Virus record (IMG/VR): IMGVR_UViG_3300032214_000715
Coordinates: 62,001 to 126,000 of that record
Direction: 5' to 3' (one strand)
Length of the DNA: 64,000 nucleotides
Under the pieces are notes generated by a model. The model made no database searches. It had not been told where the DNA came from and saw only the letters and a list, made by a program, of their open reading frames with translations. Shown piece by piece: positions 3,248-26,104 of the stretch. Positions within the stretch are counted from its first letter, which is position 1; each line of letters opens with the position of its first letter. The translations under genes and the position numbers were made by a program.

Positions 3248-3937
3248 TTACTGTAGCAAAGCAAACTTCAATACATTTTGTTCGCATATATTACGATTCT
3301 GATGTGTGAACCAGTTTGTGAGTTCTGAGCCGCCCTGTTGAAAGTTTTGTCTTCTGCTTTTCTGAATCCACCCACGATTATACGTGTCGGCAAGTTTCAT
3401 TCTAGCAGCAAACGTTTTTGCCAGTTCGTTCATTGCTCGTTCTTGTTCTCGTAGAATAAGAATAGCTTCTTTAGAAATAACGTCTTTTCCAAGAAAAACA
3501 GTGGTAGACTGATCATATGTACCGCTACTAAGGACATACACGGCATTTTGTTGCGGAACATTATCATTCCACATCGGAGTTCCGCCTCTTGATACACTTT
3601 TACATTCTAGCGCGATCCAAGAACCAGAAAAATCTCTTACTAGAATATCGGGAAAAGATTGAGTTCCCGCTGGCTGAAGAATGAATGAGCCAGCTGACAT
3701 GTCTTGAAAGGCAACGGAAATCTCACTGCTATTTCCAGTTTCGGCCCATTTCTTCAAAATTTTCTTAGAGCTTTTTACTTTATTCTTCAATGTACATCTG
3801 ACAAATTCAGCTTGCTCAAGTCTAACAGCAACAGCATCTTCGTGTCCGACTTTAAATACACCGGACCTGGCGCTGTCATTCTTGAAATATGGCATCGCAA
3901 GAATGTTCTTAATCGCTTGTTGAAATTGTACAGACAT
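3248..3937 (-). CDS. PD-(D/E)XK restriction-endonuclease-like protein
   Basis: QSFPDIL...LECK motif; directly upstream of the MTase. Confidence 0.55.
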   Translation of the reverse strand: MSVQFQQAIKNILAMPYFKNDSARSGVFKVGHEDAVAVRLEQAEFVRCTLKNKVKSSKKILKKWAETGNSSEISVAFQDMSAGSFILQPAGTQSFPDILVRDFSGSWIALECKSVSRGGTPMWNDNVPQQNAVYVLSSGTYDQSTTVFLGKDVISKEAILILREQERAMNELAKTFAARMKLADTYNRGWIQKSRRQNFQQGGSELTNWFTHQNRNICEQNVLKFALLQ

Positions 3938-5913: not shown

Positions 5914-5964
5914 CTTCTCCTGTTTTCTAACTTGAATACAGTATAGCAGATACCCGATTTATTG

Positions 5965-6198
5965 TCAAGCGATCACGATCACGCGAGGGAATTCAGGCTT
6001 GTCAAACATATGTTGGCCTTGCTGCGGCGCCGTGAAGAAATCGGTCTTGAACTCGCGATCCTCAACGCCTTCCCAAACACGCTTGATGAACTTTGCGCGA
6101 AAAGTGCCCATTTCATGTACACCGACAACCACACCAACCATGTAGCAGTTGTCAATACCGTTGAAATCCAGACTCTTGACGATATCACCGACTTTCAT
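5965..6198 (-). CDS. Hypothetical early protein (SH3/KOW-like start)
   Basis: MKVGDIV; own promoter and RBS. Confidence 0.7.
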   Translation of the reverse strand: MKVGDIVKSLDFNGIDNCYMVGVVVGVHEMGTFRAKFIKRVWEGVEDREFKTDFFTAPQQGQHMFDKPEFPRVIVIA

Positions 6199-14236: not shown

Positions 14237-14331
14237 TGGACCGTCGGACAGGATTCGAACCTGCATCAGTATACAGTGATACCACTCCAGTTACCTTTGT
14301 CCGCGTTCGTAGCGCGAGGGGATACCGACGG
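14237..14331 (-). tRNA. Non-canonical tRNA-Arg(ACG) with rewired D-arm
   Basis: 7-bp acceptor, anticodon arm, T-arm and CCA present; only 7 nt where the D-arm belongs. Confidence 0.7.
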
Positions 14332-14752: not shown

Positions 14753-15029
14753 TGGTGGGACCAGGGGGGTTCGAACCCCCGACCAACGGATTAACCTACC
14801 ACTATAGTTTTCACTACCAGTTTCCTGTTTGTGGTCTGGACTATACCTTCATCGTATCATTTCTGACTTAGATGCCCGCCGTCTAGTCTCTACACGTTCC
14901 CATTACTGGGCTTCGCTCGGTATCGCCATTTTACAGGGTTCACCGAATTTGACGGGTTCTACTTACAAAATTTCTTTTGTAGCACTCCTATTTTAAAGTC
15001 CGCTGCTCTACCGACTGAGCTATAGTCCC
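14753..15029 (-). tRNA. tRNA-Lys(TTT), intron-containing
   Basis: Exons 15029-14996 and 14794-14753 rebuild GCGGA-CTTTTAA-TCCGT. Confidence 0.88.
14795..14995 (-). mobile_element. Group I intron (about 201 nt, no ORF) in the tRNA-Lys anticodon
   Basis: AAATTCGGTGAA, GTAGAGACTAGACGG and AAGGTATAGTCC core elements; terminal G. Confidence 0.88.
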
Positions 15030-15300: not shown

Positions 15301-16182
15301 ATGAAATATAAATCACCACTGTGTTCATGCATAGTATGTCATGAAACAAAATCAGCAAAAGGCATATTTACCCATTATATAGTAAGTCACACTGAAGAAG
15401 GGTCAAACAGATTACAGCGTGGACAAAAAAATGGCGTCGAAAATGCAAAAAAATCAAACAATAAAAATTTCACTGAGAGAATTAAAAAATATGATCAGTC
15501 TCCAAAACAATGTATAAATTGCAACAAAAAATTAGATTATGACAAAAAATTTAGTAAATTTTGCAATCACTCTTGCTCCGCGTCTTACAACAATAATTTG
15601 CGCAGTGCCGATACAATTAGAAAACAAGGTAATTCTCTGAAAGAAACTCTTAAAAATATTTTTGAGTCAATCTCTAAAATAAAATTTAAAACTTGTACTT
15701 ATTGTTATAAAAATTACACATGGCACAAAGGAATGTCATTTAAATTTTGCTGTATAATCTGCAAAGAAAAGGAACAATTCCATAGATTATCTACTCTTGC
15801 AAAAGATCGTGGTCTTGGAGGGGTCAGACCGTCTAAACGAATACTGTACAAAGGAGTATTGCTTGGGTCCACATATGAAGTTAAATTGGCAGAATCACTT
15901 GATGATAATTGCATCAAATGGATAAAGCCAGCACGATTGAACTACGTGGATCCATTCGGAAAAGAGCGCACCTATGAAGCAGATTTTTATCTGCCAGAAT
16001 ATAATGTTTATCTTGACCCTAAAAATGACTTTTTAATTAATAATATTAATCCAAGATTAGGTTTTAAAGATTCAGAAAAAATTCATTTAGTATGTAAACA
16101 AAATGATGTTCAAATTTTCATACTTGATAAAACGCAATTAACATGGCAGCATGTTAAAAACATTATTGATGGTTCCTCGTGA
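15301..16182 (+). CDS. Zn-finger plus PD-(D/E)XK putative homing endonuclease
   Basis: Several CxxC pairs; STYE...YEADFYLPEYNVYLDPK; TATAAATA at about 15195. Confidence 0.7.
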   Translation: MKYKSPLCSCIVCHETKSAKGIFTHYIVSHTEEGSNRLQRGQKNGVENAKKSNNKNFTERIKKYDQSPKQCINCNKKLDYDKKFSKFCNHSCSASYNNNLRSADTIRKQGNSLKETLKNIFESISKIKFKTCTYCYKNYTWHKGMSFKFCCIICKEKEQFHRLSTLAKDRGLGGVRPSKRILYKGVLLGSTYEVKLAESLDDNCIKWIKPARLNYVDPFGKERTYEADFYLPEYNVYLDPKNDFLINNINPRLGFKDSEKIHLVCKQNDVQIFILDKTQLTWQHVKNIIDGSS

Positions 16183-17370: not shown

Positions 17371-17469
17371 TAGCGACCCTTTGTGGGCAGGATTCGAACC
17401 TGCAAGTGGCTTCTATTTCCACTGGCCCTATTAGAGGCCTATGTTTACCATATTCCATCACCACGGGTC
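17371..17469 (-). ncRNA. tRNA-like RNA (type II body, bulged 9-bp acceptor, abnormal anticodon loop)
   Basis: D-arm, long variable arm and perfect GCAGG-TTCGAAT-CCTGC T-arm. Confidence 0.6.
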
Positions 17470-19338: not shown

Positions 19339-19423
19339 TGGTGGAGTGTACTGGGATCGAACCAGTCGTGCCCGAAGGCGGCGGATTTACAGTCCACTGC
19401 ATCACCATTGATGCTTCCACTCC
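19339..19423 (-). tRNA. tRNA-Tyr(GTA)
   Basis: Type II cloverleaf with CCA. Confidence 0.93.
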
Positions 19424-19935
19424 ATTATTCTTTACCATAGTTCAACACACTACCAGTCCCGGGGACTTGAACCCCTTTGCTCTAGATAGTTTCCTGACAT
19501 TTCGGTCTGGCAAGTAATATGCTGAACTATGGTGCCAATCATTTACATTGGCTTAGGGAATTTCGGTCCTCACGGGTGCTCCGCTACATACCACCCATCT
19601 ACCATACAAATTATCCGGTCTTTGTATGTAGACTTTTTACTCTCATTTACCATATTGAAACACACTACCGCAAACTTTCAATGCACGATGCAGTCTATGG
19701 CATCCGTAATGTGCTTCAATATGGCGGCAAGTTTCGTGATAGTTTGATGACGTTGTAGAGGTTCACTATGGCGTGAACTTACAGAGCGCAATAACTTCTC
19801 CCTATCAAAAACCCACTTGCCTATTACCATAGTTCAACACACTGATGAGAATCACACTCCCCTATTTCTCACAATAGGTTACGCCTAGGAGTCACACACA
19901 GATTCGGCTGTGCTGCGATACAATACGCTGAACTA

Positions 19936-20118: not shown

Positions 20119-20439
20119 TGGTGCCCGGAGCCGGAATCGAACCGGCACGGCCGAAGCCGAGGGATTTTAAGCGTGTTGTCTCAAAGTTTCCAATGAGCAC
20201 GGACTATCTCTTTACCTTCAACATTACTTGTTAAGGCAGTGGGCGTTCTATGCTGGTTATTAAGAGGGCTTTACCTCTCCAGTAGTCTCTACACCTTCAC
20301 TGAATGTATTCAGTGCTTGGCTCGCGATTGCCATTTTACAGGCTCTCCCGAATTAACCCACAGTTTACTCACACATTTCTGTGTGAGGGGGACGGGCTTT
20401 CTGGTCCTCCCTTGTGTCTACCTATTTCACCATCCGGGC
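20119..20439 (-). tRNA. tRNA-Leu(TAA), intron-containing
   Basis: Exons 20439-20408 and 20171-20119 rebuild AGGGA-CTTAAAA-TCCCT. Confidence 0.88.
20172..20407 (-). mobile_element. Group I intron (about 236 nt) at tRNA position 31/32
   Basis: TTAATTCGGGAGA, GTAGAGACTA and AAGAGATAGTCC core elements; terminal G. Confidence 0.85.
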
Positions 20440-21521: not shown

Positions 21522-22137
21522 ACATCTATTTATGCTTTGACCTATTGTTCTATGTTTTTACTATATTTGAACACACTGCCAGTCCCGGGGACTTGAACCC
21601 CTTTGCTCTTGATAGTTTCCCGACATTTCGGTCCGGCAAGCAATGCGCTCAAATATAGTATCACGCTACGTCAACAGTGCTAGTATTTAGCACCTCAGTT
21701 GGCGTGATACAAAAACTCTATGCTAATTTTTAAAGATCATCGCTGATTTCTCAGCGTTGAAGACAGTATATCAGAGTTCTGATTTATTGTCAAGAAACTG
21801 CCAGGTAGCTTAATGTGTGATTTCCACTACCCTGTTACTCTGTATCAGTCTAGATTGCTCTAGCATCAACCTGCGTCACACTGTGTGCAGACAGTATCAT
21901 AACTATATCAGGACTCCCATTTATTGTCAACAACTCTCAATGATTAGATCGAAATGCACTCGCATCTGCTTTTTGAGCCGCGTGTTCTACACCCTTGATT
22001 CCTAGACTAGTACTAGAGGCGTGTGCCCATTTACACTAGCACTTCGATCTAATCACTGATTGTTAAAGAACTTGTTGATTTCTCAACTGTTAGAGACAGT
22101 ATATCAGGGTTCTGATTTATTGTCAAATTTTTGGTTA

Positions 22138-22470: not shown

Positions 22471-22710
22471 TTCTTGTTCCTTTTTTCTAACTTGAATACA
22501 GTATATCAGTTACCTGATTTATTGTCAACTGTTATCTGTAGTGTGCTTATCAGCCCATCCTGTTAATTCAAGCTATACACCCTTACCAGATGTTCACACC
22601 GTTACATGCGGGGGTTATTTCCCCTATCGTATGCCCCCGTAACGAGAGGCATATGGGCTGATAAACACACTATAGATATCTGTAATGCGTTTTAGGCTGA
22701 AGACTTCATA

Positions 22711-22780
22711 AACTCTAGAGGGATTCGAACCCTCGTCACCGACCGATGGGCCAGTGTCTTATCCGCTAGACGATAGAGAC
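22711..22780 (-). pseudogene. tRNA-like element with short anticodon loop and no CCA
   Basis: D-arm and GAGGG-TTCGAAT-CCCTC T-arm, inside long hairpin 22678-22874. Confidence 0.6.
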
Positions 22781-23108
22781 TCCCTCCTTTTTCGCTCGGC
22801 AAAGCTACTCTGATCGGGGTGAAGTAACAGACCTTCTGACGATTGCCGCCATCAGCCTAAAACACACTACAGATTGTTAAAGAACTGGACAGTTTACGCT
22901 ACTGTCAAACGAAGACCTGTAGGCTATCAGGCTGCCACGCTGATGTTAACACCGATCAACGGGATTGTGCTTCCCGAAACTTCTAGACAGTGACGGTGGG
23001 AGTTTGTTGTCCCGCTTATGTCAACAGTCTCAGAGACCCTGTTTTTTGATCAGTTCTTCAGCGTATGAATACATTATAGTTGAAGACACATTTATTGTCA
23101 AATTTTGG

Positions 23109-23895: not shown

Positions 23896-24149
23896 TCTTC
23901 AACTCCGAAATGTCGTTTGATCTTATTTCCAACATATATCAATGCCTCGTTGAAGCCTTCATAATACTCACTTTTGGTATTGGCATATCGGCTATTCACA
24001 GATAACTCCGCACACTCTTCCACAATGAGTTCGGCAAACTTTTTTACAAACTTTTCACTATTGACTGACAATGCGATATTTGACACTGGATGCCGTGTAG
24101 TAGCATATTCATTAGCCTGTTGGGCAAGTTCAAAGATTCGTTCGTTCAT
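23892..24149 (-). CDS. MNERI-family small protein, copy 1
   Basis: MNERI...KFAELIVEEC...HFGVEE. Confidence 0.75.
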   Translation of the reverse strand: MNERIFELAQQANEYATTRHPVSNIALSVNSEKFVKKFAELIVEECAELSVNSRYANTKSEYYEGFNEALIYVGNKIKRHFGVEE

Positions 24150-24186
24150 TTTGATAGTCCTTCCGCCACACCTTGCTCATCTAGTT

Positions 24187-24402
24187 TCAAAGTTTCAAGT
24201 TTAATTGTTTCTGTGCTTTCTTTAGCGTTGATGCAGGAACATCGGTACCTACCTCATTCCAGTGTGTTGAAACATGATAAGTTCCATCGGAATTCTTTCT
24301 GTCTACTTTAACCGTTTTATTATGAAAAATATGACGAGGATTAGGATGCGTCACTACTACCCTATCACCTGGGCGATACTGGACACGAAAATCATCCATC
24401 AT
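24187..24402 (-). CDS. Hypothetical SH3/KOW-like protein
   Basis: YRPGDRVVV; ATGA-coupled start. Confidence 0.6.
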   Translation of the reverse strand: MMDDFRVQYRPGDRVVVTHPNPRHIFHNKTVKVDRKNSDGTYHVSTHWNEVGTDVPASTLKKAQKQLNLKL

Positions 24403-24593
24403 TCTTCTGACTCCCAAACAATTTCATCAGTCTCACCAAGCGGCTCGACACGAACAATCTTGGCACCGTAAATCAGGTTCTTGTTCCAGTAATTGGTCAC
24501 AGACTTCTTGACGCCGGAAACAGAATCATGACCGTAAGTGGTCCAAGACTCTACCTTACCTTCAAAGAGTGCAGTGACATGGTATGCTTTCAT
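24399..24593 (-). CDS. Hypothetical early protein
   Basis: Own promoter and AGGAG RBS. Confidence 0.7.
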   Translation of the reverse strand: MKAYHVTALFEGKVESWTTYGHDSVSGVKKSVTNYWNKNLIYGAKIVRVEPLGETDEIVWESEE

Positions 24594-24658
24594 TTCGCTT
24601 GCTCCTGTTTTCTAACTTGAATACAGTATAACAGATACCCGATTTATTGTCAAATTTG

Positions 24659-24687
24659 TGGCACCCCGGAGAGGATTCGAACCTCCA
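24659..24687 (-). pseudogene. 3' half of a split non-canonical tRNA-Arg(TCT)
   Basis: GGAGG-TTCGAAT-CCTCT-CCGGGGT-G-CCA. Confidence 0.75.
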
Positions 24688-24721
24688 TTGAGATAAATAA
24701 AATATCACGGAGAATAAATCA

Positions 24722-25318
24722 ATGTTTCACTATGTCTATAGAATTACTAATATAAAAAACAATAAACACTATTATGGCAAAAGATCATCTAAAGTTACTC
24801 CATTTGAAGATTTAGGCAAAAAATATTTCAGTTCCTGTAAAGATAAGTTATTTATTAATGAGCAAAAAAAATTTCCCCAAAATTTCAAATATAAAGTAAT
24901 AAGATGCTTCAATAGCTCAACTAGTGCTATAAATTTTGAAATAAAATTACACAATAAATTTCAAGTAGATATCTCACCTCATTTTTATAATAGGGCAAAA
25001 CAAACATCTAATAAATTTCAGACATCTTACGTTTCTATCGATACTAGAAAAAAATTATCAGATGCGACCAGAAAGACTAATATAGGTGCTATAACGTCTA
25101 AAAAAAGAGCGGAATCTAATAGAAAAAATGGAGACGTTAAATGGCAAAAATATATAGAAATAGTAAACGCTTCCACTATTGATTTTACCAAATATGGGTG
25201 GGCTAAATTATTGGCCGACCTACTAGGAATATCTCATCAACAATCGTCCAAATGGCTCAAAAGGCATTGCCCTGAAATTTATTCAACGTGTTTCAAACGA
25301 AAAAATGGTCCCGCGTAG
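24722..25318 (+). CDS. GIY-YIG homing endonuclease (Seg-like)
   Basis: HYVYRITNIKNNKHYYGKR...YFSS...E...FYN. Confidence 0.88.
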   Translation: MFHYVYRITNIKNNKHYYGKRSSKVTPFEDLGKKYFSSCKDKLFINEQKKFPQNFKYKVIRCFNSSTSAINFEIKLHNKFQVDISPHFYNRAKQTSNKFQTSYVSIDTRKKLSDATRKTNIGAITSKKRAESNRKNGDVKWQKYIEIVNASTIDFTKYGWAKLLADLLGISHQQSSKWLKRHCPEIYSTCFKRKNGPA

Positions 25319-25380
25319 TTGAATCGAACAACTATTCCAAATTTAGAAGATTTGTATATTTTCCATTATATGAACGCGAG
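25306..25380 (-). tRNA. tRNA-Arg(TCT), canonical, nested
   Basis: Cloverleaf with CCA. Confidence 0.88.
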
Positions 25381-25388
25381 AAATTCTT

Positions 25389-25439
25389 ATCACTCCAATT
25401 ACACTGCTACGCTTTAGAAGAGCGTTGTGGTACCGAGGT
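25389..25439 (-). pseudogene. 5' half of a split non-canonical tRNA-Arg(TCT)
   Basis: ACCTCGG-TACCACA-ACGCT-CTTCTAA-AGCGT-AGCAGTGTAATTGGAG. Confidence 0.75.
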
Positions 25440-25492
25440 ATAGATTCAAAGTATATCTGGTGTTTGATTATTTGTCAAGTGTTTGTGTTGAT

Positions 25493-25575
25493 TGGTGCTG
25501 AAGGTGAGACTCGAACTCACGTAGGTTTCCCGACGGCTTACAAAACCGTTGCAATTGCCGCTATGCGACTCCAGC
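25493..25575 (-). tRNA. tRNA-Thr(TGT) with long variable arm
   Basis: Cloverleaf, GG-GAAA-CC extra arm, CCA. Confidence 0.88.
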
Positions 25576-25799
25576 GTTACTATCTTTATTTAGTCTCTAT
25601 TATAGGCGCAATAATTTTTTTGTCAAACACTGTGTTGTCCGAAACTGCTTTAGTGTCATGATCGTCAATAAAGACGGCTCCGATATTGTTGACACAATTT
25701 GTTCCATTCATTAATTACGCGTTCGTTTATCGTACATGAGATTTCCCAATTACTCATTTTTAATCCTTTCAGTTGATAAATATATTTAAGGAGAATAGT

Positions 25800-25913
25800 A
25801 TGTTAGAAACATTATTATATCTATTGATTGGCGCATTCATTGGTTGGAATATTCCTCAACCAGAATTTGCTAAAAATTTACAAGCAAAAGTTATAGCATT
25901 ATTCAAAAAATAA
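25800..25913 (+). CDS. Small membrane protein (37 aa)
   Basis: MLETLLYLLIGAFIGWNIPQP...; ATAAATA and AAGGAG RBS. Confidence 0.65.
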   Translation: MLETLLYLLIGAFIGWNIPQPEFAKNLQAKVIALFKK

Positions 25914-26104
25914 CACACTCAACATTAAGTGTGTATATTAAAGAGCACTAGTTAATGCTCTTTAATATAGTATGCCCGTCGCATACATGTCTATTGAACT
26001 GCGTAGTTATAAATAACCAACACGGTTCTCCAGAACCCCCCGTTTTAATTAAGCAGATTAAGGCTGCCGACGCCCGGGTACGCCACACACTTTACTACAT
26101 AAAC

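Follow-up and report, generated by a model that had tools for sequence, protein, structure and literature searches.

A mobile endonuclease-tRNA-Arg cassette splits an unusual tRNA-Arg(UCU)-like gene in a phage genome

A cassette of 701 bases, composed of a homing-endonuclease gene of the GIY-YIG type and an ordinary tRNA-Arg(UCU) gene, has inserted into an unusual and unannotated phage tRNA-Arg(UCU)-like gene (hereafter R-TCT) that is unbroken in related phages. The element thus cuts one arginine tRNA gene in two while bringing a standard one with it. The locus lies within the window analyzed here, a stretch of 64,000 nucleotides from IMG/VR record IMGVR_UViG_3300032214_000715, in which all 26 tRNA genes called by ARAGORN are found on the minus strand between 11.6 and 25.6 kb. 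We favor with reasonable confidence the reading that a SegB-like free-standing homing element inserted into R-TCT and most likely inactivated it, and that its cargo tRNA now uses the R-TCT promoter, although the specificity of cleavage and the loss of function of R-TCT are inferred.

The split gene and its unbroken counterparts

A preliminary description of this region proposed that two tRNA halves about 700 nt apart, pairing across a 7-bp acceptor stem, are separated by a complete tRNA-Arg(TCT) and an antisense GIY-YIG gene. Every element is where this description placed it (Table 1). The insert forms a compact AT-rich block, with a GC content of 0.24–0.36 over 24700–25400 against 0.42–0.49 in the flanks, and consists of just the tRNA, the nuclease ORF, 12 nt beyond the tRNA and 30 nt beyond the ORF. 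ARAGORN places the inner tRNA at 25306–25380, and the stop codon of the ORF (25316–25318) lies within the 3′ end of this tRNA.

Table 1. Features of the split R-TCT locus and related elements of the window.
Positions	Strand	Feature	Details
25450–25478	−	Sigma-70-type promoter of the split gene	TTGACA, 17 nt, TATACT; 11/12 match in a promoter scan
25393–25439	−	5′ part of R-TCT (47 nt)	Acceptor strand ACCTCGG; T8 A9; strand x (CAC); anticodon arm with a 5-bp stem and loop CTTCTAA (anticodon TCT); linker; strand y (GTG); D-loop-like TAATTGGAG
24692–25392		Inserted cassette, 701 nt	Boundary ambiguous by 1 nt
25306–25381	−	Canonical tRNA-Arg(TCT), cargo of the cassette	7-bp acceptor stem; 4-bp D stem; D loop with GGA; C35; A73; encoded CCA; GC 35%; Rfam RF00005 48.9 bits (gathering score 29)
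24722–25318	+	GIY-YIG (Seg-like) homing-endonuclease ORF, 198 aa	Antisense to the tRNAs; last 13 nt overlap the 3′ end of the inner tRNA
24659–24691	−	3′ part of R-TCT (33 nt)	Variable loop TCAAT; T arm (GGAGG / TTCGAAT / CCTCT); acceptor strand CCGGGGT; discriminator G; CCA
14237–14331	−	Unbroken paralogue, rewired tRNA-Arg(ACG)-like gene	20-nt variable arm at the position of the cassette in R-TCT
14814–15005		Group I intron in a tRNA anticodon loop	
20180–20414		Group I intron in a tRNA anticodon loop	

The acceptor pairing on which the preliminary description relied is weak evidence by itself. Indeed, with G-U pairs allowed, four different heptamers within 1.3 kb upstream pair 7/7 with CCGGGGT, and joining the halves at about 1000 break-point combinations gave no tRNA called by ARAGORN. 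The latter result is explained by the absence of a D arm at the usual place, as only 5 nt lie between T8 A9 and the anticodon stem, and not by the halves being unrelated. What settles the matter is homology to unbroken genes. When contigs of public sequencing runs were aligned to the region, one contig of a DNA run (X2) was found to join 24691 to 25398 with only CTCC between them, skipping 706 nt, at a depth of 76, in a near-identical relative whose flanks are 89–99% identical to the window. No depth was observed over 24812–25316 in three DNA runs (X2, X4, and X5), next to none (2.74) over 24711–24811 in X2, and only 1.48 over 24812–24912 in a fourth run (X19), which is labelled RNA but looks like DNA and gave no expression information.

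A pattern built from the X2 junction retrieved an IMG/VR contig (L055) from a related phage with 65–91% nucleotide identity in syntenic blocks. In L055, the gene is unbroken, has 76 nt plus CCA, and is preceded by its own TTGACA/TATAAT promoter. Positions 3854–3881 of L055 match 24664–24691 of the window (28/28 nt), and positions 3881–3929 match 25392–25441 (94%). Both halves are collinear with unbroken genes elsewhere, with BLAST E-values of 5e-14 and 1.7e-7. Notably, pair 1:72 is A:T in the window and G:C in L055, a change on both sides. Unbroken versions also occur in two otherwise unrelated phages (contigs L066 and L126), to which the 5′ part is 92–94% identical. The tRNA model of Rfam scores the unbroken L055 gene at 37.6 bits, above the gathering score of 29, by deleting the 15 D-arm positions and treating 17 nt as a variable-region insertion, whereas ARAGORN calls none. 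Furthermore, the split allele itself is 100% identical in several independent assemblies (JGI 3300032214, 3300034198/ERZ21844626, and Logan ERR2848492). An assembly chimera, or two unrelated tRNA-like fragments that merely happen to pair, is excluded by these data although the acceptor pairing by itself is not significant.

Exact-pattern scans for each half in IMG/VR and a protein-seeded locus search returned only the same phage. Megablast and blastn searches of INPHARED found no close relative, the tail sheath being only 38–48% identical to those of jumbo phages of the Atu_ph07 and PA5oct kinds. A syntenic relative at 62% amino-acid identity (L007) has a canonical tRNA-Arg(TCT) at this place instead of the rewired gene, and was not informative about the insertion.

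A nuclease travelling with a tRNA-Arg gene

The assignment of the ORF as a GIY-YIG endonuclease is moderately firm. It matches PHROG 314, "homing endonuclease," with E = 2e-21, while the Pfam SegE_GIY-YIG match is only weak (E = 0.016) and a PDB sequence search with the nuclease profile found nothing relevant. The motif residues (YVYR with Y4/Y6, Y17-Y18-G19, R21, E73, and N90) are invariant in the alignment of 8 homologs, and the ORF shares 35% identity over 74 aa with the N terminus of T4 SegB. The best fold match of the predicted model, whose N-terminal 80 residues have a pLDDT of 65–89, is the catalytic domain of I-TevI (1mk0, probability 1.00, E = 0.012, TM 0.59 on the target). I-TevI is encoded in the T4 td intron, whereas the present gene is free-standing and has a different DNA-binding domain.

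Strikingly, the closest full-length homolog (P0122, 54% identity), which lies in an unrelated contig of 123 kb (L015), also overlaps an antisense tRNA-Arg(TCT) at its 3′ end. The junction is at the same residues, with the CFKRxxG codons running into the TGG complementary to the CCA end, and the two tRNAs differ in their stems by paired changes but share the anticodon loop and the T loop. Only these two of the homologs aligned share the C-terminal domain. Nuclease plus tRNA-Arg(UCU) is therefore a conserved unit, and the tRNA is cargo of the element. More distant relatives of the C-terminal DNA-binding domain sit in phage tRNA clusters in 23 of the 24 metagenome loci examined, often within 25 nt of a tRNA gene. 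This is in line with what is published for SegB, a free-standing homing endonuclease of the T4 tRNA gene cluster that recognizes GGTTCRANTCC and tends to cut after CCAR (PMC2330249), that is absent from related phages and carries the linked tRNA genes along, and whose association with tRNA genes is general (PMC13096335). In T4, segB lies 5 nt from tRNA-Arg. However, SegB lies between tRNA genes on the same strand, whereas here the gene is antisense, overlaps its tRNA, and the pair lies inside another tRNA-like gene.

The L015 pair sits in an intergenic region and is not inside any recognizable tRNA-like gene. The cargo tRNA is thus the habitual neighbor of the nuclease and was not acquired for this insertion, which tempers the proposal of the preliminary description that the cassette supplies a substitute for its target. 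The primary target of the nuclease may accordingly be the 3′ flank of canonical tRNA-Arg(UCU) genes, the block having reached R-TCT once, by illegitimate recombination or repair of an off-target cut, and being now inherited vertically. This accidental landing is possible but less likely. It is consistent with the relaxed specificity of SegB, which cuts many tRNA genes (PMC2330249), with two contigs (L141 and L142) carrying a similar canonical tRNA-Arg(TCT) without the nuclease, and with the fact that only the window's copy is split among 88 rewired 5′ parts in all loci fetched, a set obtained with a pattern that requires contiguity. On the other hand, once the cassette sits between two halves homologous to unbroken alleles, any cut in those alleles would be repaired from it, so that homing would follow automatically, and the presence/absence polymorphism among near-identical phages is the usual signature of an active homing element.

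The rewired tRNA-Arg family

The odd layout of R-TCT also occurs unbroken in the same window in a gene with anticodon ACG (Table 1), which is 91% identical to its L055 copy with changes on both sides in one acceptor pair and two T-stem pairs. A scan of IMG/VR with a degenerate pattern returned 87 stretches; 72 of the matches were not called by ARAGORN. In total, 53 distinct sequences parse into one architecture, defined here, that comprises in order a 7-bp acceptor stem, T8 A9 plus 1–2 nt, a 3-nt strand x, one nucleotide, a 5-bp anticodon stem with a 7-nt loop, a linker of 3–10 nt, a 3-nt strand y, TAAY(N)GGAG, a variable region of 3–20 nt, the T arm, and the acceptor 3′ strand. The two parts of R-TCT fit every segment. 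All anticodons are arginine (TCT 40, TCG 7, and ACG 6). Strands x and y pair, with pair 1 being C:G in 53/53 sequences and pair 2 being paired in 53/53 with four Watson-Crick types. Overall, 145/159 cells are paired against at most 60/159 in slid registers, and 0 of 2000 shuffles reach the observed value.

This layout is what one obtains if the two D-stem strands are swapped. The 22–25-like strand leads into position 26 and the anticodon arm, while the 10–13-like strand follows that arm and leads into a D-loop-like A-A-Y-(N)-G-G-A that keeps the G18 G19 A20 motif, A20 being, it would appear, the main ArgRS determinant in E. coli. In 51 loci carrying such genes, a canonical tRNA-Arg with the same anticodon is present nearby in only 6. 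The preliminary description argued from the insertion that the rewired RNA normally works as tRNA-Arg; this view is strengthened more by the family-level evidence, namely the exclusive Arg anticodons, the G18-G19-A20-like motif, and the complementary isoacceptor sets. The genes are present without annotation in cultured phages (PAK_P2, phiPsa397, several P. putida phages, Limnohabitans phage DC31, and Streptomyces phage Francob), and we found no description of a D-stem-swapped or D-armless phage tRNA-Arg, at least in the collection of literature searched.

Homing, replacement, and the fate of the two halves

The cassette sits between the D-loop-like GGAG and the variable loop TCAAT, about 5 nt upstream of the T arm, precisely where family members carry long variable arms of 17–20 nt. 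A CNNNG motif (CATTG on the plus strand), as for I-TevI, ends exactly at the insertion point, but this is weak evidence since it is expected about 1 in 4 times by chance within 2 nt. The most economical interpretation is that the nuclease makes a double-strand break in unbroken R-TCT alleles of co-infecting relatives and that repair copies the cassette in. By analogy with T4 SegB, it probably recognizes the conserved T-arm box GGTTCGAATCC, yet this remains only an analogy because the DNA-binding domain is unrelated to that of SegB. The T arm of the cargo tRNA (T52...A62 in place of G52...C62) may make it immune to its own nuclease. Only 12 nt separate the cargo tRNA from the 5′ part, and the R-TCT promoter is the only one placed to drive it. 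We infer that the cargo tRNA has no promoter of its own, is transcribed from this promoter, cut out by RNase P and 3′ processing, and takes over AGA/AGG decoding, the phage therefore tolerating the loss and the element persisting. In the window, the cargo tRNA is the only canonical tRNA-Arg, the other Arg decoder being the rewired ACG gene. A candidate T4-type late promoter upstream of the nuclease gene (GATAAATA) is unsupported, as TATAAATA is not enriched in the window (7 found, 6.4 expected).

The alternative raised in the preliminary description, that the halves reassemble after processing, found no support, although a two-piece or religated R-TCT functioning alongside the cargo tRNA is not excluded and is regarded as unlikely. 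In its favor, both halves are still pristine at every family-conserved position, the insertion is at a tolerant site, no terminator-like site was found between the inner tRNA and the 3′ part, and nucleotides 1–7 pair with 771–777 in the minimum-free-energy fold of the 781-nt transcript. There is also a protein precedent in Aeromonas phage Aeh1, in which the NrdA gene split by the free-standing homing-endonuclease gene mobE stays functional through reassembly of the two protein fragments (PMC3045599). However, pairing between the two ends of the insert, including a closing helix (GATAAG/TTTATC), is no better than chance (−2.7 kcal/mol against a null mean of −4.0, with 80% of shuffles doing as well or better), and the 3′ piece would carry roughly 610 nt of antisense nuclease RNA with no evident processing site. 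The intactness of the halves is explained equally by a recent insertion, since near-identical cassette-free relatives exist. The split and permuted tRNA genes of Nanoarchaeum and Cyanidioschyzon likewise encode a tRNA body as separate 5′ and 3′ pieces, but rely on complementary leader sequences or bulge-helix-bulge motifs and on the archaeal/eukaryal splicing endonuclease and ligase, and neither such an endonuclease nor such a motif is expected in a bacterial host. Group I introns, two of which interrupt tRNA genes of this window, are also polymorphic between relatives, as illustrated by tRNA-Leu(TAA), which has no intron in L055. However, Rfam detects no ribozyme in the cassette, with no match at E ≤ 1 in 24000–26000 apart from the inner tRNA and the upstream tRNA-Thr, and the insertion is not in the anticodon loop.

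More speculatively, and with little weight at present, the cassette could be a dedicated "break-and-replace" element whose nuclease recognizes rewired tRNA-Arg genes and converts them to a locus expressing a canonical tRNA-Arg from the victim's own promoter. In a more radical version, the inner tRNA would act as a protein-free "intron," removed by RNase P and RNase Z-type processing to leave a working two-piece rewired tRNA.

While homing endonucleases that live among phage tRNA genes are known, as exemplified by SegB, we found no description of one that is fused to a tRNA gene as fixed cargo or of one nested inside another tRNA-like gene. Here, the element apparently avoids harming its carrier neither by splicing, as introns and inteins do, nor by fragment reassembly, but by bringing a functional equivalent of the gene it breaks. 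The more surprising object is the target family itself, which is present in many metagenomic phages and, unannotated, in cultured ones. For this family, the case is a natural knock-out-and-complement experiment, since a phage that has most likely lost R-TCT carries a standard tRNA-Arg(UCU) in exactly its place and under its promoter, which makes the question of whether these permuted RNAs act as tRNA-Arg directly testable.

A family of tRNA-Arg-like genes with swapped D-stem strands

The split gene and a second gene of the window belong, together with loci L055-L139, to a widespread phage family of tRNA-Arg-like genes whose D-stem strands stand in swapped order. The 53 distinct members parsed all have Arg anticodons, and covariation supports the helix between the two strands (x:y). 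These genes are missed by ARAGORN and are unannotated in cultured phages, namely PAK_P2, Limnohabitans phage DC31, phiPsa397, and Streptomyces phage Francob, while the tRNA model of Rfam hits the short-variable form at 37.6 bits by deleting the D arm.

Locations of the features noticed in the window, in other contigs, and in a cultured phage
Sequence	Positions	Strand	Feature
Window	14237-14331	-	tRNA-Arg-like gene
Window	24659-25439		Split gene
PAK_P2 (NC_022967)	89788-89845		tRNA-Arg-like gene, unannotated
Window	14753-15029 and 20119-20439	-	Two interrupted tRNA genes
Window	14814-15005 and 20180-20414		Group I introns
L015	6001-6672 and 6591-6665	+ and -	Endonuclease ORF and antisense tRNA-Arg(TCT)
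Window	19440-19540 and 21566-21666	-	Two copies of a ~100-nt element
Window	19339-19424	-	tRNA-Tyr(GTA)-like gene
Window	17379-17467 and 22709-22781	-	Two "tRNA-???" calls
Window	15301-16182	+	293-aa ORF
Window	24598-24653 and 5914-5968		Promoter-containing stretch
L007	1-4454		Ribonucleotide reductase large-subunit gene, broken up
L007	11338-11937		HNH-type gene

Atypical tRNA-like sequences and repeats

A class II tRNA-Tyr(GTA)-like gene is not called by ARAGORN; Rfam scores it best as tRNA-Sec (36.6 bits, below threshold), and position 7:66 is mismatched. Furthermore, two calls of undefined identity made by ARAGORN have odd anticodon loops, and neither has a CCA end at the called 3' end. 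The ~100-nt element, of unknown function, contains the T-arm-like GGGGTTCAAGTCCCC preceded by GACCGAAATGTC(A/G)GGAAACTATC. ARAGORN and Rfam call nothing there; similar repeats recur at 21.7-22.1 kb and in L055, a contig from a related phage. In addition, a 56-nt stretch containing a promoter (TTGACA, 17 nt, TATACT with TG) lies directly after the CCA of the split gene and recurs at 96% identity 19 kb away. One Logan contig of this phage ends here.

Introns and mobile nuclease genes

Two tRNA genes, a tRNA-Asn(GTT) and a tRNA-Leu(TAA), are interrupted in the anticodon loop by group I introns (Rfam 69.3 and 56.1 bits, in the order of the table). In L055, ARAGORN calls the tRNA-Leu(TAA) as an 85-nt gene without an intron, so this intron is polymorphic as well. 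In the homologous cassette of contig L015, the endonuclease ORF reads through the whole antisense tRNA-Arg(TCT), and its last ~27 codons are therefore encoded by the complement of a tRNA gene. The 293-aa ORF, located on the opposite strand inside the tRNA cluster, has only weak PHROG hits, to families of unknown function and to a Holliday-junction resolvase family, and may be another mobile nuclease gene. In the syntenic relative L007, the gene encoding the large subunit of ribonucleotide reductase is broken up by intein and LAGLIDADG-type insertions, and an HNH-type gene also sits between tRNA genes. The tRNA and nucleotide-metabolism region of this phage group is a hot spot for mobile nucleases.
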